This document shows positions 1,182-15,900 of a stretch of 64,000 nucleotides of DNA, piece by piece. A program made the position numbers and the translations under genes. The DNA is from Felis catus. Lineage: Eukaryota. Where the stretch lies: assembly GCF_018350175.1 (NCBI RefSeq), contig NC_058372.1, forward strand, positions 30,504,001 to 30,568,000, given 5' to 3'. Every line of letters starts with the position of its first letter. The stretch's first letter is position 1. The notes under the pieces are model-generated. The model had not been told where the DNA came from. It saw nothing but the letters and a program-made list of their open reading frames with translations, and did no database searches.

Positions 1182-2328
1182 CTAAGGAATATAGAACACT
1201 CTGTTCTGAGGGTTATTGCAGAACTCCAGGAAGCAGCATCGAGAAAATATCCAGAAGCCAAACACTGGAGAAGAGCGGGTATACGAACAATCACTCATCT
1301 GCTCCTTGCGGCGGCAGTCACTCACCATGATGTCAGAACCACTGCCTGGGGAAGGATGGCAGCAACCAGTGATACAGACATCTCAGGTCCCAGGCACAAT
1401 CCCAGACTCTTCCATCCCCTCCCTCCACATGGACTTACCATCACTGATCCCACACCCTTCCCTGACCCCCCCAAATGCCAAGATTCCTGGAACTGGACAG
1501 GGGCAGGAATGCCAGGGAGTCACCAGCTATGGATCCCATGGAAGACTGGTGGGAAAGAGCCATTCAAAATAAAGTGATGCGGGGCACCTGGGTGGCTCAG
1601 TTGGTTAAGCATCCGACTTTGGCTCAGGCCATGGTCTCACAGTTCGTGAGTTCAAGCCCCGCATCTGGCGCTGTGCTGACATGACAGCTCAGAGCCTGGA
1701 GCCTGTTTCAGATTCTGTATCTCCCTCTCTGCCCCTCTCCGACTTGTGCTCTCTCTGTCTCTCTCTCTCAAAAATAAATAAATATTAAAAATTTTTTAAA
1801 AATACAGCGATGGTTGGAGGGGGCTGAGTTGGGTCTTGCTGGGGGAGAACTAGCACTTCAGCTGGGACCATAAAAAAAAAGTTGGGAGATGTATTGGAGG
1901 TCAGATTGCAAAGAAAAGGTGTTTGTCATCATTTTATGGAACAAAAGAGAAGTTGGTATCTCTTGCTATTATATATATATTAGAGGGGGAAAAAATGTGT
2001 TCACAGGGACATTCATTCCTGCCCTGCTTGAGAGAGGAAAAAATTAGAAGCAACCTACAGATCCGTCAATAATGGGATTGTCAAACTCTGCTATGCCCAT
2101 GCCATGGAGAACCATGCAGCAGGTCAGAAGAACAGGGAAGCTGTTTACAAACTGATATGGAAACTTAAAATTCCCATGACTGTTCATTTTAAAAAACCAA
2201 GTGCAGGGTGCCAGGGTGGCTGAGTCAGTTGAGCATCTGACGCTTGATTTTGGCTCAGATCGTGATCCTGGGGTCATGGGATTGAGGCCCACGTTGGTCT
2301 CTGTGCTGAGCGTGGGGCCTACTTAGGA

Positions 2329-2373
<45 letters not shown>

Positions 2374-5300
2374 CCCCCCCCCACCACCATCTTCCTCCCT
2401 CACTCCCTCTGTCTCTACCTCTCTCTCTCAAAAATAAATAGATGATAGATAGATAGATAGATAGAGGCACCTGGGTGGCTCAGTCAGTTAAGCATCTGAC
2501 TTCAGCTCCGGCCATGATCTCGTGGTTTGTGAGTTCAAGCCCTGCATTGGGCTCTGTGCTGACAGCTCAGAGCCTGGAACCTGCTTCAGATTCTCTCTCT
2601 CTCTCTGTCTCTCTCTCCGCCCCCCCTCTAAATAAACATTTTTAAAAGTTTTTAATTAATAAAAATGTATAAAAAGCAAGTGCACACCAGTGTTTACAGT
2701 GGTATGCTACTGTTTATGGAGGAAAGAAAAAGAGGTGAAACAACATATTTGCATAGAGTGAGATGTACACAAAAGATCACAGAAAGGATATCAAGAATGT
2801 GGAAAGATGTGGGGCATCTGGCTCGCTCAGTAGAGCATGTGACTCTTGATCTCAGGGTTGTAAGTTCGAGCCCCACGTTTGGTGTAGGGATTACTTAAAA
2901 ATGAAAAAAAATCTTTAGAAAAAAAAGAGAATAGGAAGATTAGTTTTGTGTTGTTTGTGCATGAGAGCTGGGTGGCTTGTGCCAGGAGTGGGAGGGAGAC
3001 TTCTCTTTGATGAGGTTGAGTACTCTGATATTGAACCAAAAGCATAATAAAAGGACTTGAATTTTAATTTGAAGGCAAGTTTATGCAGTGGTTGTTAAGA
3101 GCACCATCTCCGGAATCACCACAAATTGTGGTTCAGCTTCTAGGAGAGTTGGGCAAGATTTTGACCTTTCTGGGCGTCTGTTTCCTCATCGGTAAAATGG
3201 GGATAGCAATAATAAAAAACCTGTCTGAGAGGGTGGTAAGTGCTTAGAACAGTGCTGGCACATAATGTGTTCTGTGTTTGTTAAAAAGAGCGGAGGAGGG
3301 GGCCCCAGCTGCTCAGTCAGTAGAGCATAGGACTCCTTGATCTAGGGGTTGTGAGTTCAAGCCCCATGTTGGGCATTGAGCCCACTAAAAAAAGCAGGGG
3401 TGGAGGGCGGGGAGTGAGGGATCGTGTGGAAGAGCAGGCATGAGAAACAGGGACTGCAGTTTCAGGAAGTTGAAACTGAGGTGGAGCTGTCCAGAGGGCA
3501 ATTTCACATGACAATTTGGCCTAACATTCACATTCATAAGGAAGCAGAGCAAATCCTCTGGGGAGAGTGAAGTGGGAAGACAGCTAATGCCTAAATTTTG
3601 GTGAACGTGAACCATTAGGGGTCTCCCTGAACAGACAGAGAGAAGGCAGCCTGAGGAGAAGCCGGGGGATCTAGTGATCACAAGCCTCCCCCACAAGGCC
3701 GGGTGCTGTAAGAAACGCATACGCCATGGGGCGCCTGGGTGGCTCAGTCGGTTGGGCGTCTGACTTCAGCTCAGGTCATGATCTCACGGTCTGTGAGTTC
3801 GAGCCCCGCGTTGGGCTCTGTGCGGACAGCTCAGAGCCTGGAACCTGTTTCGGATTTTGTGTCTCCTTCTCTCTCTGCCCCTCTCCTGCCCTGCTGTCTC
3901 TCTGTCTCAAAAATAAATAAAAACATTAAAAAAAAGAAACGTGGACACCAGCCAGCCCCATGAGGGAACAGGAGGGGTGGAAGTGGAGACAGAGAATGGC
4001 TCTGAAGGTGAGGAAGGAGAGAGCATGACAAGCACTCTCTAGGTAGGGGTTGTAGGAACCAGACTGTGGGGTACAGCTGAGAGATGCAGCTCAGGAATGG
4101 GTCGGGCCAAGGACAAGCAGCTCACTGTTCTTTATGAGCAGAGTCATGCAGCTGCTGCCAGGAGGGGCAAGGCAGATGTCAGATCCCAGAAGGCATCCCA
4201 ACTCCTTGGTCTCCAAGAGGCATCGATAGCAGCGCAGATATTTGGAGAACTGAGCTGGATGAGGGGGTTCCGGATTGACAGGATCAAAATTACCTAGAAC
4301 ACAGAGCAACACTGACTCCAACCCCACCTAATTTCCAGGCTGGTCAAGCCCATTCTTCCCTCCCCAGCTTCCCATCTCAGAAAACCATGAAATCACCCGT
4401 TCTTTAAAACCATCTGGCTTAATCCTCTATCAGAGGCTTTCGTCAGTTTTAAAACCTCCATTCTCTGCTCTTATACCTCCTGAAATAAGGAACTCATTAA
4501 GGAATTCATTTACTCATTCAACATGTATTTTGAGGTACTACCATGTGCCCAGCACTCGGCAAGCTCCTAAGTTCAAAGACTAAGCAGAAGCAGTTAATTC
4601 CAGCCTGGGCAGTTCTGTGAGGACAGTTCTTCTTCTGGGACTTGGTTTCACAGTCTCCCCACCCCTATGGACCCCCTTTTGAATATGCTTTCTTAATCTG
4701 TAATGTTCAGTGAAAACAAGAGTGCATCATCACAGGACAAGAGGAATCTATGCTTTGTGTGGACAGGAGACTTCGAGTGGCCCCCCATCACATTATTTGT
4801 TTGGTGGTCTAATCACTGGAAAGACCCATATTAAACTTTGTCCACCAAAGCCTTCCCCACCTACGTGTATATATGCTCCCTCTTCCTCTTGTTCCAGGCC
4901 CAGATCACATGTCAGTGAGTCCCCAGACCCAGCAGAACACCTAGTGGGAGGCAGATACTGAACAAACACTTTGAATCCTGTTTCTATATAGACAGTGTTT
5001 TGCAGCCATGTTGAGGAGGTTATCAGGCTAGATTCAGCCTTGTTCTACTGGGTGGATCCTGGTTCTGTTATCTAGCATGTTCTCGGAATCCTCCCTATTC
5101 TGTACTGCCCCAGATTTAAATGGAGTCCTTTCAGTATCTGCATTTAGGTCACTGCTGTTGAGACAGCCCTGGGGTAATAACTAGAGATCTTCCTCAGAGT
5201 GAACAGCAGTCCATTACCAGTCCCTAGGCATTATCTCACCAAGTCCATCCATCCCATCTTTCCCTCTGCTTGGTTTTACCTGAGCATCCTGGGCAGATGT

Positions 5301-5461
5301 GCCCAGACACCTGGTATCTGTGGGTCTCTCTATCCAGCAGACCAGGAGACCCTTCTGACCCCTTAGAGCCACTTACCAAACACCAAGCTCCTCATGACCA
5401 GCACTATTAAAAGGACCATGTACAGGGCTTGGGAGGTGCTATGAAGGCCCATGGGCTCCAT
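1182..5461 (-). CDS. LY6G5C: Lymphocyte antigen 6 family member G5C (secreted-type Ly6/uPAR protein), 138 aa, 3 coding exons
   Basis: Exons 5377-5461 (MEPMGLHSTSQALYMVLLIVLVMRSLVF), 4126-4293 (GNFDPVNPEPP...LRCYRCLLETKELGCLLGSDIC...SCMTLLIKN) and 1182-1345 (SSGSDIMVSDC...RCCFLEFCNNPQNRVFYIP*). All GT-AG, phase 1/1, 417 nt, 10 Cys, no GPI tail. Confidence 0.95.
1581..1803 (+). mobile_element. CAN-SINE (SINEC)
   Basis: ggggcacctgggtggctcagttggttaag head, (CT)n, A-rich tail, degenerate TSD aaaataaagtgatg/aaaatacagcgatg. Confidence 0.9.
2206..2665 (+). mobile_element. Two tandem CAN-SINEs (about 2206-2440 and 2465-2665) with (CT)n and (GATA)n microsatellites
   Basis: Two tRNA-derived heads, CT tracts and A-rich tails. 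Confidence 0.85.
2811..2920 (+). mobile_element. Short older CAN-SINE
   Basis: ggggcatctggctcgctcagtagagcatgtgactcttgatctcagggttgtaagttcgagcccc followed by an A tail. Confidence 0.8.
3085..3285 (+). mobile_element. MIR fragment
   Basis: MIR core tgtttcctcatcggtaaaatgggga...taagtgcttagaacagtgctggcacata. Confidence 0.7.
3299..3392 (+). mobile_element. Short older CAN-SINE
   Basis: gctcagtcagtagagcataggactccttgatctaggggttgtgagttcaagcccc followed by an A tail. Confidence 0.75.
3728..3935 (+). mobile_element. CAN-SINE (SINEC_Fc-like)
   Basis: Canonical head and tail; flanking aagaaacg repeats. Confidence 0.9.
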
Positions 5462-5699
5462 ACTCCGGCTACCTGCAGGGCCTGCTGCCTACTAGCCTCC
5501 AGTTGGGGCTTATATTGGTGAAAGAGAAGTTGGCCAAGAGGAAAGAGAGAGGCAACACCCATTTGGGGTGGAAATCAGTCCCAGAACAGCCAGAGAAACA
5601 GAGTGTCCTCACCCACGGCCACTCTAAGACCTAACATCCTGGCTTGGGGACAGGACCCAGACAAAAGGGGAATGAGAGGGAAACTTTTTTTTTCATATT

Positions 5700-6140
5700 T
5701 ATTCTACAGAAGTTTACTGAATCACTGTATCAGGTGTTGGGGATACAACATTACACAAAATCCCTGCCCCCACAGAGCTGTCTAGTGGGGGAGACAACAA
5801 ACAATGATGGGGCGATGGAGGGGGAAGGATGAGTACTTCCCGGGGAGCACCTGGGCAGTCCTGAGCACTGACCAAAGGAGCAACAAGATCAGAGTTCTGT
5901 TTGTAAAAGATTGCCGAGGCCGGGAAACCAGTTAGGAAGCTATTCCTGAGTCCCGTCACAAGATGGCGGCCTGGTCTGGCAGAAGAGAGGCAAGGAAAAG
6001 ACGAATGAATCTGACATTTATTTAGAAGGAAGACTGGACAGATTTGCAGTTAGACTGAATATGGAAAGAGGAAAAGTGGGGGATAGGCTTGCCCAAGGAG
6101 GTGATTGGTGGTACCATTTTTCAAGATGGGAACAACGTGG
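5700..6140 (-). mobile_element. LINE-2 fragment
   Basis: Purine-rich L2 signature gggaaaccagttaggaagctatt...agatttgcagttagactgaatatgg. Confidence 0.55.
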
Positions 6141-6199
6141 AACTGTCAGAAATCTAGAAGCGAGGACACCTGAGTCCCGACTGACCTATTTAGCCCAGT

Positions 6200-7620
6200 G
6201 GCCCCTGTGGGTTCCAGGTAACTAGCCAGCACCTTTCCTTACGCCCCCTTTTACCCCACCCCGCCTAAGCTCCGCTGCAGGTCAGTAACTCTGATCTCCG
6301 GCGCCCACAAGGCTCCGGCACCGGGCTCTCGCTCTCCGAGCCTGACTGCACTTCAGGGCTCCCAGGAGGAAGCGGGGGCCGCCCTCTGGCCACTCTCAGT
6401 TCTCTGCCGGGGTCGGGGGTGGGGGGGGGTGGCTGGCTGGCAATGAAACCTGGGAAAACATGCCTGGCGTCAGACCTAGCCTTCCGCCCCTAACAGACGC
6501 CCAGAGCACCACGCGGCTTCCCCGGAAGGAGGCGCTGTGGCACCACCAACCCACCGGGCAGGAGGCTAACGCCGCAACCAAAGAGCGGAGGTGGGCGTCC
6601 CAGGAGCCCCGCCCACGTCCTTTGCTGGGGTCCGCCTTTACTGTGGGGTTCGCCCGCTGAGCTCCTTCAAGCGACCAGCTCAGCACGCACCTCGCCAGGT
6701 CAGGGTCTCTGAGAGACTCAGGGTTTTCCCTTTAAGGGTCGGGGGTGCTGTAGGAAGAGCTCGGCGTACAGGAGCAAACCACCTGCTCCAGTTTCTGGTC
6801 TGGAGGTTTGGGGTGCGGCCCTGAGAGAGGGCTCCCTGCTTACAGTCCCAGACCATCCGAGAATCATTTGGCCTCGGGGCGCTGATGGGGAAGATGGGAA
6901 GAAATCGACTCAGATTTGAGCCAAGAAAGACGGACAGGAAAGAAAGAATACGAAGGAAAACGCACGCCACTGCGTGCCCAAGAGCCTTGGGATAAATGAA
7001 ATCAGACAATTGTATTATTGAAAAATCGGAGTAATGAAGATTTGGGGAGGAGCGCCTGGCACCTGCATAAATGTCTGCTGAATGAACGACAGAGTGGTAG
7101 ACAGAATCAGAGAGCGGAGGCTCCTCTTGAAGCGAACGGGCAGAAAGGAGTTAGAAGGGAATTTCACAGCGTCCTCTGAACCCGGCCTGCGGATAGCCGG
7201 AGGGAAGATAGGGGCGGTATTTCGAGGCTGGGTTCGGTGCGAGCTAGGAGAGTGGTTCCACGGAAGGGGCGTGGCCTCAGGGCATTAATCCAGTCCCAGT
7301 TTCATTTTGCTACTCCTCAGTCTAAACGGCTGGGCGCGGCCAGTGCGCTTGCCGAGCCTGGTGAGTTCGTTGCCGCGGTGATGGGCTTGGTGGAGGCTTT
7401 CCAGGGGTGAAGAGGCGGGGCGCTGCTGTAGTCGCCATGGTGATAGCAGCCGAGGACAGTTTCTGCGCGGAGTGCCTTGGGGACGCGGGATACCGGTGGG
7501 GGTAAGCAGCCGAGTGACGAAACAAAGGAGGTGGGGCCTGAGGAGAGAATGCTACAGTCAGGGCTATGGGCGGGGCAAACAAGGGGGCGGGGAGCCAAGT
7601 TCTGTTCGCTGAGCAGCTAG
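6200..7620. promoter_or_regulatory. Intergenic CpG island with GC boxes and RFX-like motifs
   Basis: High CpG density; GGGGCGG-type boxes near 7211, 7424, 7568 and 7584; X-box-like GTTGCCGCGGTGAT (7369-7382) and GTCGCCATGGTGAT (7431-7444). Confidence 0.75.
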
Positions 7621-8127
7621 ACCAGGCGGTGTGGAGTGGAACTAGAGAGCAGCGATCTTTAACCCGCATATAAATGAATGAAAGAAAAAAAAAAAAAAAA
7701 AAAAGACTTGGTTCCTGAGGGAGTTGGGATGGCTTGTTGGATGGATGAATGAACGGATAAGTACCTGGCCCTCACTCCCTTGTGACAGCTGGGAGGGAAA
7801 CACCTGACCCTCTCGGGGGAGTCGAGCAAATCCTCAGCCCAATCACCAAGCCCTGAGCCTACTCCCGCAACTCACACTGAAAGCAGCGCAGGGCGAGCCC
7901 GGGCCCAGCCCAGGGCCCACCTCTCCTTCCCAGGTTTCCTGCCCAGGTGTTAATCCTTCTTTGTCCCAGCCTCCATCCTCTCTCCCCGTGTACCCAGCTC
8001 CTCGGGGGCGCCTGGGCGTCCAGACCTTGCCTGGTGCCCAGTAAGGCAAGGTCCAGAGTTCCAGCAGATGTGGGGGGTCTGCATCTCGGCTGTTCTTCTC
8101 CTGGGACTGTTGGAACCCTGCTATATA
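6680..8127 (-). pseudogene. Decayed LY6G5C-like Ly6/uPAR paralog (putative unannotated pseudogene)
   Basis: TATATAG at 8121-8127; exon 1 8031-8084 (ATG, frameshifted signal-like LLELWTLPYWAPG, GC donor); exon 2 7776-7938 (GNLG...LALRCFQCELRE*AQGLVIGLRICSTPPRGSGVSL, 13/33 gapless identities to LY6G5C exon 2, donor A|GTGAG at nearly the homologous position); exon 3 from 6881 (strong acceptor, ...RMVWDCK vs LY6G5C IMVSDCR). Confidence 0.7.
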
Positions 8128-9761
8128 GGGTGAGGAGTGGACAGGGAGCTGGTCCAACCGGGGGCAGGGGGTGGTGTGTGTGGTGGTTCTAAAAACAAAG
8201 AGCTGATGTGAGCTTTATCACGTGGGGAGTAATCTAAGGAGGTAGACTGAGGCCCCTGGGGTTCGGTGGTCCAGAATTCAAATGTTAAGCCTCCCCTCTC
8301 CCCACCCACTTCAGTTATCTGAGGGCTCTTCATGGCATCCACTGTTCTTTATGCAGGAAGAAGGGGAAGGGGGAGGTGATGGTAGAGGTCAGTCAACAGA
8401 GTCCCTAGTGGCCTTGGCCAGGAAGGGGGAGTCCTTTGTCTCCAGGGTGTGGGAGGTGGGGCTAAGTGCCCCCTATTTGCATTCAAGGAGGTTGTTACCT
8501 TAACTGAACAGACTTGTTTTCCAGGAGGCTAACTGTCCTGGTGGATCCTGGAAGGTGAGGTTCAGAACCATCCAGCTGGACCTACAGCTTCATGCTCCAC
8601 ACTCCCCAACCTGTTTGCCCCCTGGGATGGGACAGAGGAACAGAGTGCCAGTATCAACTCTCCAGTGTTTGCTAAAGGTGGAGCATTCTGGAGCTGTGGC
8701 CACCTCTTCTCTTTTGACCCCAATTATCAGGTATATCACCTGACAAGTCTCAGATCACCCTTCCAGTGGAGACTCAGTATGCCCCCACTGAAGGAGCTGG
8801 TGAGCTGGTGAGGGCAGACAGCCTCTGCCCAGAGACTGAGGAGGAGCTTCATGCCCTGGGGTTCCAGGAGACACTGATATTAGCCAGAAGCTATCTAGGA
8901 TATTAGAACATTGTTGCTTGCCCACGTTGAGCTTGTTCAAAACAGAGGGCCAAGGAGGGTAACCCTGGGAGCGTTTCAGCTAAAAGAGGTTTCCCAAGAA
9001 GAAGGTGGCCAGGCAACAAACTGACAGGTGGGAGGAAAACTCATTCTGTTCCATGAAGTCTGAGGATTGGAAATAGGACAGAAGTTACAGGAAGCCAATT
9101 TCCTTGGGTTCACCTTAGGGATTTTCTTCTAATAGCGTCCAGAAAGGTGAAGTGTGGCTCTGGGAAGCCTCAGTCCCTGGCAGGCCCTGTCACTGAACTG
9201 CAACAGATGCGTGAAAGCGACAAAGGCACGGTGAAGAGGTGTGTAGGGTTTGCCGCAGAAGACATGGGGAGTGGGCTGTTCCTCACTCCCCCTTGGAACA
9301 GCAAGAGCTGAGTAAGGAAAACTGGTGATACTTAAGGTGAAGCCATGCAGGTTGGAGATGGAAATCTGTAGAAGAGCCAAGTAGGGGAAATCAGGTACTA
9401 GAAAACACTTTGTAAGTGAAAGCTCTGGAGCTCTTAGCAAAGAGGGGGCAACCGTGAGCTCCTACAGTGGCTGCAGGGTTATGCAGGAAGGACTGGGGCG
9501 CAGGCTAGGGAGGCTGCACGTGTGATACTACTAGACACACTAGCCAATGGGGAGGCTTGGGGACCCACTACATGAGGAGAGCTCAGGTTGGGGGCTGGAG
9601 GCCTGGGAGAACAGCAGGGATGGGGAGGGTTAAGTTGGCCGGCTGGAGTCAGGTTCCCCAAAGCCCGGCTCTTTGCAGCTTCAGCTGTCACCACTACCGG
9701 CCCCAAGCTCCTGGACACTTGGAAAGTCACACAATTAGCCAGCCTGTAGAAAAAATACCTT

Positions 9762-9767
9762 TTTATT
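9762..9767 (-). terminator. AATAAA poly(A) signal of ABHD16A
   Basis: tttatt about 230 nt past the stop codon. Confidence 0.75.
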
Positions 9768-9994
9768 AATTATTAGGAATAATCCATTCACTGAATGCGG
9801 GGTATATGTTGGGGAAGGTTAGGTACTGCCAGATGGATGAGGGGAAACGTGCAATAGGGCAGTGAGAAGGGGGACAGCCCCCCACTTTCCACAAACTATA
9901 AATAGCAACGTGAACACAGAGAATCACAAATAAGAAGAGCCTTCCTCATGTCTCCTCTTATCCCACTCTTTCAGAATGAGTCCCACTGTGGTCC

Positions 9995-12900
9995 CTAGAG
10001 GTGCCAGGGCATCTGGAAGTTCGGGGCCGGGAGCGGGGTGCAGTGCGTGGCCTCGAAGTTGTGCAGATACTTCTGAGCCTGAAGGAAGAGGGCAGGACAG
10101 GTGGGGTGCAGAGCACCGCAGTATACAGCACCCCCAAACACCTCCACAGCCTCTGAAACCACCTCCCACACCCTACAAGCTGCCACTTCCAATGCTTACA
10201 TGGTATCCCCTGTCTCCAAGCCCCCTGGCCATCCCGGCACCCCCTTCCTGCCCGCCACCCCTCAGCTCACCAGAAACAAGGCCAGCTGCCGCCTTCCGTC
10301 TGCACTCATGTCCTCCCCTGTAGAGAAGAGCCGCTCATGAGCCATGCATCTGGGTATTCATCCCCCTTCCTGGCTTCTTCCCAACACCCCCTCCTGCCAC
10401 AGGACGTCCTTACCCACACTCCAGGGGAAGTCAGGCCCGTGCTCTGCCTGGTAGGAGCGGAGGACGGACAGGCACCAGTCCTCCTCCACCTCCCAACGGC
10501 TATAAATCGAGGCTGCTCAGGGAGAGAAAGGAGGGCTTGTCAGTGACCTGGCCCGGCCAGGCCCCCACCCAAAGGCCTCACCGCATCCCCCTGCACCTTC
10601 CTCCAGCTGTGAGGAGGCTTCCAGCCACTGCCTCACCACTCGAAGACCCTCCTCTGCCATTACACGGGGATACCTACAGAGGGAGCACCAGGACGAGAGG
10701 TCAGGACCCAATTCTCTTCACTCCTCATCCCTAAACCCTCTTTCCTCCCTCCCTTGCCACGCCAGTGTCAGTAAACACATGCACACACACGCGCACACAC
10801 TCTCGCTTACCGATACTGTAGGAGCTTCAGCAGGAGGTCATTGCCTCGGTTGGACATGATGTCCTCAGGAACCCTGGGGGTGAGAACAGTGTACACTGGA
10901 GGGGCTGGAGGTTGGGGAGGAAGGGTCTGGATACCTAGGTTTCTGGTGGGCAGAGGTGGGAAGGGCAACTTCCTAGCTACATCTGGGATCTAGGAGGGCA
11001 GAGGCTCCCAGGCACTCACGTGGTGGTGATGATCTCATCCTTGGTTCTGCGGATCAGCAACACAGGGCCCTGGTACCTTCAGAGGACAGTGTGGTGCTCA
11101 GAGGGAGAGGGGACAAGTGGCCACCCCACCCTTGCACTGGCTGCAGCCTAACCCCCTACTATAGCAGGGCCCCACAGGCTAGCCCTTCACTCAGGGGTGA
11201 GAAAATATTTAAGAACAGGCATGGCCCACATTCTGGCCTTACTGGGAGATCTGCTTGAACACCCAGCAAAGCCTGTACAGTGGGGAAGTGGGGAAGGGAG
11301 TTACACGCCGGTTACTGGCCTGCCCTCACCTGCACAGCTGTTCTGCATTGTTCAGATTGAGATGCTGCCTCACGGTCCTGGTCACAAGGCCCCCTAGAGT
11401 GGGATCAGAGTGACGGGATGGCAGAGACAAAGCCCTTGCACAACATATAGTTCCCCACTGTTCACAAAGAAAACTAAGGCCCCAGACAGGGGAGCCCTCC
11501 TGCTTTTCATCCCGTTGGGTGACCCACTCCCCACCTACATAAAAAGGAACCATCTCCAGTTAGAATAGTTCCCAGTTCCAGCCCACCCCTTCCCTGGAAA
11601 GGCAGGCCTGGGAGCTGCACTCACTCCAGCTATCTGGCATAACCTTCAAGGCCAAGGGCACCAAGTCATCAAAGGAGGCATCCAGGATCACAGCACTAAT
11701 GTCTGGGTAGGACATGGCTGCCCATGTGGCTGGTACCAGAACAAGGAAGAAAGGTGAGGACCGAGGGGCTCCTGCCCACCACCCCACCTTTGTCCCATTG
11801 ACCCTACAGGCTGACACCATCATCTCTACTAGGTTAGCCCCAGGTCCCCCTTAACCCCTCACTTCACTTGGCCAGGGCACTGTATGGAGAAGACGGAGAG
11901 AGAATATCAAAGTGCATCGAAGACCACGTGCAGAGGAAAACTTCACTTCCCTGATCTCCCCGCTCCAGGACCCTGGTCTGCTTCTTTTCATAATGGGCAT
12001 AAGGTAGAAGGAAATGTGAACGTATACAAATAGGATACCATCTTCCAGACACACGCAGATATCCCTCCTCCGTCCTCTCCTCCCTTAAGCCTCTACCCCA
12101 CTGCTGGGCTCTCAGGGCATTTCCCTACTGCTCTTTGAGGGGGGTGAGGGTGGCATAATTTGCCCGGGGAGGGGGGTAGGTTGGTACCAGTGAAGCCACC
12201 GATGGACCAGGCATAGATGATGATGTCCTGGGGCTGGAAGCCCAGGCGGTGGATGGCAAACTGGACCACCACATCCATGGCATTGGCCTCATTCTGAGGA
12301 AATGGCACCCCCTGCAGGAAGAAGGGCAAACTCAGGAGTGGGTTAGCACCAGAGGCTGGTTCATGGGCCACTTGCACGCTTCCAGCACAGAGCTACCCTA
12401 CAAGAGACAGAGGGTGCAGAAGAGAAGGGTGGCGAGAGGACCCGCACTCTCCAGAAATGCCACTTCTCACTGTGGGGTGGCATCATGGTTCCCTGTCCTT
12501 GGCACCCAGGTGACAGATGAGTGAGAGCCACCAGAGAAATATACACCCCTTTTCCTAATTCCAGTGGCTGACCAGAGGGAGACAGACCATAACCATAAAT
12601 TCAGGAAAAGAAAGGGATTTCAGAGAGTGTCTCACCGTGCTTCCAGCAAAGCCTGGATGATTCCAGCCCAGGACAGAATATCCAGCTGCAACACAGGAGG
12701 AGGAGGAGGAGGGGCTATGACCTTGTGGCCTACACCTCCCCCACCTCCAGCCCCGGGGGGAAAGACCAACACAACATGGGAGCTCTAAACAACCCCAAAT
12801 TTAGAGATGAGTAACTCCAAGCTTTCTCAGAATGGGGAGATGACACCAGAGGTTCTGAGGCAGCAGAAGGGAGAGATGTGATTATGTCATGGGGACAGAA

Positions 12901-15900
12901 TGAAGGCCATAATGTTAGGGACACAGCCCAAAGGGAGGGAATGTAAGGTTGGCAAAGCGAATGGGGAGTAAACTTTCCCCCCAAATGTGAGAATTTCAAA
13001 CCTCACTCAGACAAGGTGATCTGGCCCAGGGAAGTTATACTGGTGTGGGAAGGTGGGGACATTCCATTCCAAAGGGCAGAGACGAGTATTGTGCCCTGGG
13101 CCTACCTTCCAGAGGTGTAGAAATGCAGCCCACCTCATAGAAGCCCGCGTTCCCCTCACAGCAGATCACCTACGGAAGGAAGCAGGAAGGAGGGCTGGGA
13201 AGGAGCCAAGCTGGGACTGAAAATCCCCCGTGTAGCAGGACGTGGGAGCTTTACAGGGAAGAGGAAAGGGCCTGTTGTCTTCAACGGGAATAGAAACTTC
13301 TAATTTTACAAGGTGCATGAGAGGCAGAGTGGATGCAAAAGCTTAGCAAACTGAGGAAGACGAACTGCTCGACCACTCAGCAGTGTCGTTTTCCTTGGAA
13401 GACCACCGGAGGACAGCTCTCAGAAATGGGGTTATGGATATTTTTTTCCTTTCTAGTTTTTGGGTCTATTTTTTTCATGACTGTTTCTTTTGTGTGGCAT
13501 GCCAATCACTTTCCATCTCTGGGCCCCAGACTTAGAGTCAGATAAACTTTAATTTCATGGGGCCCCGAGCCCAAACTCAGAGATGGTGGAGCTTACATGG
13601 ATTCTCATAGCAGCTGGGCAGTGCCGGAACCAGGAGTCAGCTCCCTGGACTGCTGACTCAGTGCTCTTTCCATGGCTCCCTCATGGAGGCAGGATAAACT
13701 GGAGGCCAGGCTACCTGGATTCAAATCCCAGCTCTCTCACTTACTGTGTGGTCTGGGAAAATTATCCCAGGCTCAGTTTCATCATCTGTAAAATGGGCTC
13801 TCCTAAAACTAGTACCTCTTCTGCAGGGTTGTTTTGAGGATTAAATATATGCCTTCTATGTGATAAATGCTGTCTAAGTGGTGACTATTACAAGATTACT
13901 TTTTGGTCCTTGAATGTCAACTCCTACTTCATCTATTTCCCTGTGGTAGGGTTTTCCTACGCCAACATGTCTTGAGGGTGGGGTGGGAGATGGGATTATC
14001 CCCAGATGTACTTCTTAGGGCTGCTGTAGAACTGAGGTCCCCAGAACCTCCACTGCTCTCCCTGCACCACTTTTGGGCTGGGCTCCCTGCTCCCTCTCAC
14101 CAGCTTCTGTCCCTGAGGCTCAGCTGTCCCCCGCCGGTCCACAAACATGGTGTCAATCTCGTTGCCATCGCAGGCCAGCAGCTTTGCCCGGCGCCCGTTG
14201 CACTGAGTGGGGGAGATGTTGTGAGGGGCAGGAGGTCACATCCCTGGTAGGGGGAGAAGGACCATCGGGGGTGGGGTGGGGGCAGGGGGCCTCACCTCTT
14301 CCACCAGCCGGGCCTGGCCCTGCAGCAGCATGGGCATGAGGGCCTTCTGGAGCAGGTACACTGAGCCTGGATATAGCATCCGGCGCCCCAGAGTGTGCGC
14401 CACCAAGTAGCTGTGGGGAACATGGGGTTAACGAACCCTTGACCTCAGTAGGACCCAGGGATCATCCTAGCCCTAGCACTCAGAGACTCTGGGGCCTGCT
14501 TCACCCCTGACCTTTACAGTTTTGTTTCTTGACCTTTACAGCTTTGTTCTCCTCTTTCAGGACATAATGAAGTAATATATGTACCAGGCTGGTGTTCTTC
14601 AAAATTTTTTTTACTACAACCTTTATAATATGCACATTTTATATTGTGGCCCAGTACACACATCTATATTTATAATACTGAAAATTTTAGGAGATAATAT
14701 TTTCTATATGCGATAAGTAATTCTTATTAATTAAGAGAGAGGGAGATACAGAATCGGAAGCAGGCTCCAGGCCGGGAGCTGTCAGGACAGAGCCTAATGA
14801 GGGGCTGGAACTCACAGACCGTGAGATCATGACCTGAGCCGAAGTCGGCCGCTTAACTGACTGAGCCACCCAGGCNNNNNNNNNNNNNNNNNNNNNNNNN
14901 NNNNNNNNNNNNNNNNNNNNNNNNNNNNNNNNNNNNNNNNNNNNNNNNNNNNNNNNNNNNNNNNNNNNNNNNNNNNNNNNNNNNNNNNNNNNNNNNNNNN
15001 NNNNNNNNNNNNNNNNACACTCAGCGTGGAGCCTGACACGGGGCTTGATCTCACGACTGTGAGATCATGACCTGAGCCGAAATCAAGAGTCAGATACTCA
15101 GCCAAGTGAGCCACACACGGACCCCATAGCAAAGTTATTATTAACTATGATTCTGTTAATGTATAAATGCAACTTATTTAAAGGCCCCCTATAATACTTT
15201 AAAAAATGACAGCTGTAGGGGCGCCTGGGTGGCGCAGTCGGTTAAGCGCCCGACTTCAGCCAGGTCACGATCTCGCGGTCCGTGAGTTCGAGCCCCGCGT
15301 CGGGCTCTGGGCTGATGGCTCAGAGCCTGGAACCTGTTTCCAATTCTGTGTCTCCCTCTCTCTCTGCCCCTCCCCCGTTCATGCTCTGTCTCTCTCTGTC
15401 CCAAAAATAAATAAACGTTGAAAAAAAAAATTAAAAAAAAAAAATGACAGCTGTAATTCACTCGATTTCAAGATTCATGAATGGACAGTAGTTTGAAATA
15501 TACCACACTAGACTGCAGACTCCACCAGGGCAGAGACCTGACTGTTCTGTTCTGCAATATGCCCTATTCTGCCACGTAGCAGGTGGCTAGAGCCTGACAA
15601 AGAGGGGCTTAATAAATATTTACTTAACAAATGCACTAATCTAGACAGAGAAGCTGTGGTAGGTATCTGAGAAAGACAATTAACCATTTCCAGTTAATCC
15701 TGAAATAGGATTTGTCCCCAGAAAAAAACAGATATGTACCACCCTGTCCAGCATCCCCTCAAAACTGCAAATTTGGTTTGTCCCTCTGACCAATCGTCAC
15801 ACAGGCAACACTGATCACTAAATCCATCCCTTTCCTTGGTATCTTGGAACTGCCTCCCAGCCCCCAACAATAGAAAATTACCACAGCATCTGCTCTACTG

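Follow-up and report, generated by a model that had tools for sequence, protein, structure and literature searches.

A decayed LY6G5C-type LU-5′ exon within the upstream leader region of LY6G5C in the cat MHC class III Ly6 cluster

The LU domain carries ten cysteines, five of which lie on the LU-5′ exon. Ly6 genes of the MHC class III region follow a common plan, in which a signal exon, an LU-5′ exon and an LU-3′ exon are joined across phase-1 introns. LY6G5C is one of these genes. The human annotation counts it among the genes in which three exons are mutually exclusive (PMC6071210), and human read-through transcripts ABHD16A-LY6G5C have been reported (PMC3520980). A long isoform is annotated as UniProt 'Isoform 3' in human and as 'LY6G5C isoform 1' in chimpanzee and orang-utan, while N-terminally extended models exist for Tursiops, Odocoileus and a camelid. 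A human CpG island 'located in LY6G5C' has been reported as differentially methylated (PMC5068768). The cat MHC annotation as published has no entry between BAT5 and LY6G5C (PMC2453318).

We analysed a 64-kb window of Felis catus DNA (64,000 nucleotides, the whole stretch under study) that includes this interval. A sequence-only reading had proposed a hidden three-exon paralogue of LY6G5C here on the minus strand, with a signal exon at 8031-8084, an LU-5′ exon at 7776-7938 and an LU-3′ exon at 6680-6881. All the sequence features that it described were located: TATATAG, the ATG, CAG/GCAAGG, the 92-nt gap, cag/GAAAC, A/GTGAG, the TAG, and the ag at 6883-6882 followed by RMVWDCK (slashes mark splice junctions). 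Our analysis supports the middle element as an old, unprocessed copy of an LY6G5C-type LU-5′ exon in the ABHD16A-LY6G5C interval, on the strand of LY6G5C itself; we refer to it as the fossil. The proposed exons on either side of it match something else, namely leader exons of LY6G5C itself (Table 1).

Table 1. Positions within the window of the fossil exon, the leader segments and the neighbouring gene features.
Feature	Position	Strand	Remarks
AATAAA, probable ABHD16A end	9762..9767	minus	upstream limit of intergenic interval; ABHD16A assignment inferred from exon ORFs
TATATAG	8121..8127	minus	37 nt upstream of cat ATG 8084; read from sequence
Leader exon A	8031..8097	minus	homologous to first coding exon of ape long LY6G5C isoform (UniProt human 'Isoform 3')
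Fossil acceptor, cag/GA(AAC)	7939/7938	minus	read from sequence; donor A/GTGAG at 7776/7775
Fossil LU-5′ exon, LY6G5C type	7776..7938	minus	163 nt; core homology 7793-7891
TAG, in frame within fossil exon	7859..7861	minus	read from sequence
CpG-island-like stretch	6200..7600		between fossil exon and LY6G5C exon 1; GC 0.49-0.68, CpG observed/expected 0.53-0.86
Leader exon B	7218..7475	minus	inside CpG island; homologous to ape long-isoform second exon and to camelid and deer leaders
Leader exon C	6691..6913	minus	homologous to Tursiops truncatus LY6G5C N-terminal extension; GAG/GTGCGT donor-like site past 6691
LY6G5C exon 1, coding part (signal peptide)	5377..5461	minus	profile match 5366-5485; phase-1 end at G/gtaagt
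LY6G5C exon 2 (LU-5′)	4126..4293	minus	168 nt; living counterpart of fossil; Pfam UPAR_LY6 26.5 bits
LY6G5C exon 3 (LU-3′), coding part	1185..1345	minus	

Homology of the fossil to LY6G5C was detected at the protein level. A tblastn search of positions 5000-10000 with LY6G5C exon 2 returned the fossil with 13/33 identities (29.3 bits, E=2.7e-5), and the second-best match had E=0.096. In a control of 300 dinucleotide-preserving shuffles, best matches averaged 19.5 bits (sd 1.7) and none exceeded 25.0 bits, so that the fossil outscored all 300. Across the 64-kb window, the fossil and LY6G5C exon 2 were reciprocal best matches (E=3.6e-4 and 5.2e-5), and the fossil outscored every alignment of LY6G5C exon 2 to the other genuine Ly6 genes of the window. 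MAFFT, unguided, placed both pieces of the fossil that the stop separates on the homologous LY6G5C columns. The signal is confined to 33 codons, and a LY6G5C profile scored the fossil at 5.5 bits only. Pfam UPAR_LY6 (PF00021) gave no match at E<=10 for the pieces 7862-7936 and 7776-7858, which at 25 and 27 aa leave the search little power; LY6G5C exon 2, the positive control, passed the UPAR_LY6 cut-off of 24.8 bits.

To place the fossil within the family, we compared ungapped BLOSUM62 scores over the same 33 columns. The fossil scored 54-67 against eutherian and marsupial G5C, 36 against platypus G5b, 31 against a turtle protein and 18-24 against therian G5B. These values rule out a G5B copy and mark the fossil as G5C-type. 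The exon borders are homologous as well, with Gly-Asn just past the acceptor in both exons, donors 4 nt out of register, and lengths of 163 and 168 nt. At the nucleotide level, identity to LY6G5C exon 2 was 46/99, with 48% at first, 64% at second and 27% at third codon positions, and a sensitive blastn comparison of the LY6G5C gene with the 3.6 kb upstream of it gave no significant DNA match. This low identity, together with the absence of DNA-level similarity elsewhere between the two regions, points to an old event.

The copy has decayed. Three of the five LU-5′ cysteines are present, Cys1 (TGC 7885), Cys2 (TGT 7876) and Cys4 (TGC 7828), while the Cys3 position reads TTG/Leu (7847-7849) and the Cys5 position GGT/Gly (7802-7804). 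The open reading frame is interrupted by the in-frame TAG, the acceptor is weak and purine-rich, and a TGA (7773-7775) directly follows the proposed donor. The length of the fossil, 1 mod 3, breaks the phase-1/phase-1 rule that the 168 nt of LY6G5C exon 2 obey. Because of the stop, the loss of two cysteines out of five and a length incompatible with phase-1/phase-1 splicing, the fossil is dead in this genome. For this exon the sequence-only reading was borne out, both in the resemblance to LY6G5C exon 2 (identities, retained cysteines, stop and splice sites near the homologous places) and in its view that the copy is dead in this felid.

The proposed LU-3′ exon gave a different result. The match of MVWDCKQ to LY6G5C exon 3 scored 13.9 bits (E=3.6), below the mean of 17.1 bits for best matches in shuffles. 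Of the five LU-3′ cysteines the segment keeps one, its motif region holds a single Cys, and the CCxxxCN ending is missing; neither the LY6G5C profile nor tblastn found a significant exon-3-like segment between 7775 and 5500, and Pfam gave no match on the ORF 6683-7009. Instead, 6680-6881 falls within the region of leader exon C. Residues 37-99 of the Tursiops model (P0022) aligned with cat 6913-6725 at 57% identity (tblastn, E=2.7e-17), crossing the proposed acceptor 6883-6882 and placing dolphin IVLGTQ opposite cat MVWDCK. With a chance-level score and a dolphin leader alignment that lacks MVWDC, 6680-6881 cannot count as a proven LU-3′ exon. Some doubt comes from four weak exon-3-like fragments that form a collinear chain (6856 to 5903): this chain scored 54.2 bits against 26.6 ± 9.0 for shuffles, beat 299/300 of them and topped the non-genic segments among 104 genomic controls, although it stretches over 950 nt where the exon would have 160. 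More of the old gene could survive here than our best explanation allows.

Similarly, the segment 8031-8084 showed no detectable similarity to Ly6 signal exons. A LY6G5C profile search recovered the fossil as well as the true exon 1, at 5366-5485, and nothing at 8031-8084, which matches the ape LY6G5C leader instead. The human comparison used solely the protein sequence of UniProt 'Isoform 3' (P0053): residues 3-9 correspond to cat 8091-8071, residues 11-22 to 8066-8031 in another frame, and the alignment stops exactly at 8031, right before the GC-type donor CAG/GCAAGG. Relative to the ape frame, the cat has an indel of 1 nt that lies between 8071 and 8066. The ape frames at 8031-8084 differ from that adopted in the sequence-only reading, and its frame-shifted 'LLELWTLPYWAP' looks like a by-product of this cat-specific indel. 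From the cat ATG (8084-8082) to 8031 there are 54 nt, giving phase 0, whereas the fossil, whose cag/GAAAC lies across a 92-nt gap from the 8031 junction, requires phase 1. The phases of the proposed exons, which were searched one by one, are therefore incompatible with the class III Ly6 plan. The TATATAG motif may serve the upstream LY6G5C leader as a core promoter element.

Homology to LY6G5C leaders of other mammals extended over all three segments, 8031-8097, 7218-7475 and 6691-6913, with tblastn E values from 1e-4 to 3e-17. The queries were models from apes (P0019, P0051, P0053), Tursiops (P0022), Odocoileus (P0028) and a camelid (P0016). Exon B was matched by P0051 (residues 20-105), P0019 (residues 36-83), P0016 and P0028; stops and a shifted frame disrupt this exon in the cat. 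In the ape models, exon A splices to this CpG-island leader (about 7218-7475) and not to the fossil. For the leader exons we depend on LY6G5C models from other mammals. Some of these are partial or labelled 'LOW QUALITY', and their open frames are not conserved in the cat; since the frames are broken, the leader is probably non-coding there. We infer that the cat CpG island is orthologous to the one in human LY6G5C. A search of 5000-10200 against Rfam gave no match. The proposed three-exon gene thus gives way, its outer exons matching LY6G5C leader exons in apes, dolphin, deer and camelid, and the interval, for which the sequence-only reading had no named gene, belongs to the extended LY6G5C transcription unit.

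The camelid model also bears on the age of the fossil. P0016, which is identical to Camelus dromedarius LY6G5C over its final 95 residues, aligned gap-free to cat 7920-7768 with 22/51 identities (E=1.2e-6), in a frame different from the Ly6 frame. Because this model reads across the fossil, the fossil predates the divergence of cat and camel. Back-inference of codons from P0016 indicates that the camelid Cys2 codon must be NGG, which cannot encode cysteine, that there is no stop where the cat has TAG, and that Cys1, 3, 4 and 5 may be kept. The duplication is best explained as an event that followed the separation of G5B and G5C and preceded the cat-camelid split.

The sequence-only reading had suggested that the copy might be intact in other mammals. 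When 1.84 billion representative proteins were searched with a profile, no third G5-type gene or clade appeared, and none of the 41 matches from the protein library was a distinct eutherian paralogue. A 79-aa stop-free frame (7862-8098, minus strand) that holds the first half of the fossil found no homologous proteins. With a camelid that lacks Cys2 as well, these searches speak against the suggestion.

We consider it probable that 7776-7938 is an inert LU-5′ fossil of a LY6G5C duplicate, skipped within the first intron of upstream-promoter LY6G5C transcripts, and that the flanking 'exons' are leaders. The alternatives differ in how much of a gene they place here. That a complete three-exon tandem paralogue died in place, parts of it being later re-used as leader exons, appears unlikely. 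The proposed exons do stand in the correct order and on the correct strand, exon A has 54 nt, its own ATG and a TATA-like motif upstream, the acceptor at 6882-6883 is strong and pyrimidine-rich with MVWDC a few codons beyond it, as in LY6G5C, and the exon-3-like chain is unusual. However, the exon-3 match on its own is at chance level, four of its five cysteines and its ending are missing, the dolphin alignment runs through the acceptor without MVWDC, the chain is overstretched for such an exon, and the hydrophobic frame of exon A, which is unlike Ly6 signal exons, seems to arise only through the cat indel. We give equal weight to the converse, that only LY6G5C exon 2 and its intron borders were copied upstream in an exon or segmental micro-duplication and a second gene never existed. 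Exon 2 is indeed the sole statistically detectable homologue, and a third G5 clade is absent among the representative proteins. But the fossil lies 3.6 kb upstream, past LY6G5C exon 1, an odd site for a simple internal exon duplication, and at such decay fossils of exons 1 and 3 are expected to be undetectable, given how little signal is held by Ly6 signal exons and by LU-3′ exons, which are short.

Chance resemblance, by which a GC-rich stretch would happen to read like a CxxC...C peptide, is the account we find hardest to credit. It could draw on the shortness of the match, the 46% nucleotide identity, the lack of a Pfam match and the many frames and several Ly6 queries from which the proposal arose, yet no shuffle reached the observed score, the match is reciprocal and significant window-wide, strand, borders and length all agree next to the closest relative, and the scores are specific to G5C of both eutherians and marsupials. 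Scarcely more credible is that the element still codes elsewhere, other mammals having kept what the cat lost, whether a third G5-type Ly6 gene in intact form or an alternative LU-5′ exon of LY6G5C. The camelid lacks the stop and may retain four cysteines, and codon positions 2 and 3 differ in identity as in a divergence phase under coding constraint. This pattern is nevertheless biased, because the alignment was discovered at the protein level, and the NGG codon at camelid Cys2, the library without a distinct eutherian paralogue and the 79-aa frame without matches all argue against coding. It is also improbable that LY6G5C took over its CpG island, alternative upstream promoter and leader exons from a third G5-type gene, now dead, whose 5′ end was captured and of which an intact copy may survive in some mammals. 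If true, this captured end would be the source of the long isoforms that lack a signal peptide, and would possibly correspond to the differentially methylated human CpG island.

We return to the inert fossil among leader exons, for which the following course of events can be proposed from sequence. An ancient same-strand, unprocessed duplication of LY6G5C would have copied at least exon 2 and its splice sites, and the copy would have become non-coding through the TAG, the loss of Cys3 and Cys5, a weak acceptor and a phase-breaking length. Transcripts of LY6G5C from the upstream promoter would begin near 8100, use leader exon A, splice to CpG-island leader exon B or C (the latter at about 6691-6913 and beyond), pass over the signal-peptide exon and join LY6G5C exon 2. 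The fossil would then sit in their first intron. The cat presumably transcribes this leader. Inheritance of the upstream promoter from the dead duplicate is possible, if somewhat doubtful, and might explain how LY6G5C came by its odd upstream leader.

What remains is a modest molecular fossil, not a new gene, because outside the fossil the proposed gene consists of alternative leader sequence already annotated for LY6G5C. The MHC class III Ly6 cluster gains a dead member or, at the least, a dead exon, through a LY6G5C-type duplication dated before the cat-camelid split. The fossil has no obvious effect on function in this genome. In annotation, the ABHD16A-LY6G5C interval is to be treated as LY6G5C leader plus pseudo-exon.

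The closest known relative of the fossil is LY6G5C exon 2, 3.6 kb downstream on the same strand. The two share the LRC-xx-C start, two glycines, the I-C of Cys4 and the PP that follows, besides their exon borders. Unlike its living counterpart, which is nearly invariant in placentals, the fossil has an in-frame stop, Leu and Gly for Cys3 and Cys5, a length that is not a multiple of three, a weak purine-rich acceptor and third codon positions at random identity. The neighbouring G5-type gene LY6G5B has the same three-finger LU-5′ layout and CxxC start, and platypus 'G5b' has 12/30 residues in common with the fossil, including those ahead of the first Cys, whereas therian G5B is far less similar to it than G5C is. 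Unprocessed pseudogene fragments with 5′ ends re-used as alternative promoters or leaders offer another parallel, with a dead copy likewise upstream of its living paralogue in a transcribed leader; here, descent of the leader or promoter from the dead copy is suggested by position only. Taken together, the long LY6G5C isoforms of human, chimpanzee and orang-utan and the extended Tursiops, Odocoileus and camelid models have leader exons homologous to proposed exons 1 and 3 and to the CpG stretch that separates these. The fossil exon itself is absent from the ape, dolphin and deer long models, whereas the camelid model crosses it in a different frame.

Every gene in this region of the window is carried on the minus strand (table; LU-5' and LU-3' denote the exons coding for the first and second halves of the Ly6/uPAR domain). 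ABHD16A exon ORFs start above ~10500 and the gene probably ends at an AATAAA at 9767; 6680-8127 therefore falls within the 4.2 kb separating the end of ABHD16A from the first LY6G5C coding exon. In the published cat MHC annotation the BAT5-LY6G5C gap is empty (PMC2453318). Cat LY6G5C has an in-frame TAG (5489-5491, minus strand) where other mammals start MHFMAGPAGS, and its first in-frame ATG is at 5461, so it probably starts ~12 residues later than in mole and primates. Further along the window, 14876-15016 is a run of 141 N.

Features of the LY6G5C region, in window coordinates
Feature	Coordinates	Strand	Remark
LY6G5C LU-3' exon	1185-1345	-	
LY6G5C LU-5' exon	4126-4293	-	
LY6G5C signal exon	5377-5461	-	match at 5366-5485 of a profile from eight mammalian LY6G5C proteins
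Putative leader exon C	6691-6913	-	
Putative leader exon B	7218-7475	-	
LY6G5C-type pseudo-exon	7776-7938	-	
Putative leader exon A	8031-8097	-	

A sequence-only reading had proposed that 6680-8127 holds a decayed LY6G5C paralogue of three exons. The sequence features it listed were all found at their coordinates, and the resemblance of its exon 2 to LY6G5C exon 2 was borne out. Translation of the minus strand in the frame from 7936 gave 13 identities without gaps over 33 codons (7891-7793). The fossil retains the Cys1, Cys2 and Cys4 codons and carries a TAG at 7859-7861, Leu for Cys3 and Gly (GGT) for Cys5. In a tblastn search of 5 kb with the window's LY6G5C exon 2, it scored 29.3 bits (E=2.7e-5; runner-up E=0.096). 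When those 5 kb were shuffled 300 times with dinucleotide composition preserved, the best matches had a mean of 19.5 bits (sd 1.7) and a maximum of 25.0. The two sequences were reciprocal best matches across the 64-kb window (E=3.6e-4 and 5.2e-5), the fossil scoring higher against LY6G5C exon 2 than did any of the window's real LY6G6 genes. Unguided MAFFT alignment placed both stop-separated pieces of the fossil on homologous columns. Both exons have Gly-Asn directly after the acceptor and end at a donor A|GTGAG, in a register differing by 4 nt, with lengths of 163 nt (fossil) and 168 nt. Pfam UPAR_LY6 matched neither fossil piece; on the living gene it gave 26.5 bits for exon 2 and 18.2 bits for exon 3.

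Upstream of the TAG, no stop interrupts the fossil's Ly6 frame over 79 codons (7862-8098, minus strand), a run that takes in exon A and the 92-nt intron proposed between it and the fossil. The composition of the GC-rich stretch probably accounts for this, and a protein search with the 79-codon frame found nothing. Just downstream of the fossil, a T-run of ~24 nt (7683-7706, minus strand) may be the tail of a repeat inserted on the plus strand; the camelid protein model has differing sequence and gaps there.

Over the same 33 columns, ungapped BLOSUM62 scores of the fossil were 54-67 against ten eutherian and marsupial LY6G5C proteins, 18-24 against therian LY6G5B, 36 against platypus 'G5b' and 31 against a turtle protein. 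The fossil is therefore of G5C type, and the duplication postdates the separation of G5B from G5C. At the nucleotide level only 46/99 positions were identical to LY6G5C exon 2, and sensitive blastn of the LY6G5C gene against the upstream 3.6 kb revealed similarity nowhere else, indicating that the duplication is old. Identities at first, second and third codon positions (48%, 64% and 27%, respectively) would fit a spell of coding constraint, a pattern biased by the alignment having been found at the protein level. We conclude that this segment is a single genuine ancient LY6G5C-type pseudo-exon.

The remainder of the proposed gene was not demonstrable, since exons 1 and 3 failed tests that exon 2 passed. 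The LY6G5C profile had no match at 8031-8084 or 6680-6881, and ORF 6683-7009 did not match Pfam UPAR_LY6. The LU-3' likeness claimed for exon 3 (MVWDCKQ versus MVSDCRR) reached 13.9 bits (E=3.6), below the mean best shuffle score of 17.1 bits. Four weak exon-3-like fragments, collinear at 6856-5903 (minus strand) in mixed frames, did sum to 54.2 bits, a score reached by 1/300 shuffles (26.6 +/- 9.0). When 104 real segments of the window served as controls, only two covering LY6G5C exon 3 and one with a true Ly6 LU-3' exon scored at least as high. This chain, which extends over 950 nt versus a 160-nt exon and was scored by a test devised post hoc, gives only a hint of an exon-3 remnant.

Nor is the interval without a named gene: N-terminal extensions of several LY6G5C models map onto it. 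The ape long isoform, annotated as 'LY6G5C isoform 1' in chimpanzee and orang-utan, falls in one cluster with UniProt human 'Isoform 3'. In this long isoform, residues 3-9 (SRDADLP) correspond to cat 8091-8071 and residues 11-22 (CWGAGPCYTGHK), in a different frame, to cat 8066-8031 (CWNSGPCLTGHQ), the alignment stopping exactly at the proposed exon-1 donor. The following ~85 residues map to exon B, within a CpG-island-like stretch, and LY6G5C exon 2 comes next; the deer model P0028 also uses the CpG-island exon. The Tursiops extension matches cat 6913-6725 (57% identity, E=2.7e-17), coinciding with the proposed exon 3. It continues uninterrupted across the acceptor suggested there, dolphin IVLGTQ standing for cat MVWDCK. 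Exon 1 is therefore real but belongs to an upstream leader of LY6G5C, spliced past the fossil in the ape models. Its hydrophobic reading after a 1-nt shift appears to stem from a 1-nt indel specific to cat and located between 8071 and 8066; in apes the frame of this region is not signal-peptide-like. As judged from these mappings, the pseudo-exon would lie in the first intron of the LY6G5C upstream-promoter leader. In cat the leader frames are disrupted (the ape Met codon is absent, and a frameshift is followed by several stops), and the leader is thus probably non-coding.

An intact fossil in other mammals, which had been considered possible, was not found. Among 1.84 billion representative proteins, a profile search matched only 41, comprising LY6G5C orthologues or fragments, two LY6G5B (platypus, possum) and one turtle protein, with no third eutherian G5 clade among them. 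The camelid model P0016, whose sequence over the final 95 residues is the same as in dromedary LY6G5C, has an N-terminus that crosses the fossil in another frame (cat 7920-7768, gap-free, 22/51 identities, E=1.2e-6 window-wide), indicating that the fossil sequence predates the carnivore-camelid divergence. Camelid Ly6-frame codons, back-inferred from P0016 residues and hence degenerate, hold no stop at the cat TAG position and permit Cys1, 3, 4 and 5, while the Cys2 codon is necessarily NGG; the camelid exon would therefore not be intact either. Among the rodents, LY6G5C models of Peromyscus, Psammomys, Meriones, Mesocricetus and Ctenodactylus (P0023, P0043, P0044, P0050/P0097, P0020) have lost conserved LU-domain cysteines or are flagged LOW QUALITY, and LY6G5C itself may be decaying in those lineages.

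The CpG-island-like stretch (6200-7600) is ~1.4 kb long and overlaps exons B and C, at 0.7-2 kb upstream from the start codon of LY6G5C; its GC content rises to 0.68 and its CpG observed/expected ratio to 0.86. In human, a differentially methylated CpG island 'located in LY6G5C' has been reported (PMC5068768), and the cat and human islands may be orthologous. LY6G5C is also among the genes with three mutually exclusive exons in the human annotation (PMC6071210), and read-through ABHD16A-LY6G5C transcripts have been reported (PMC3520980), both consistent with a complex LY6G5C 5' end.
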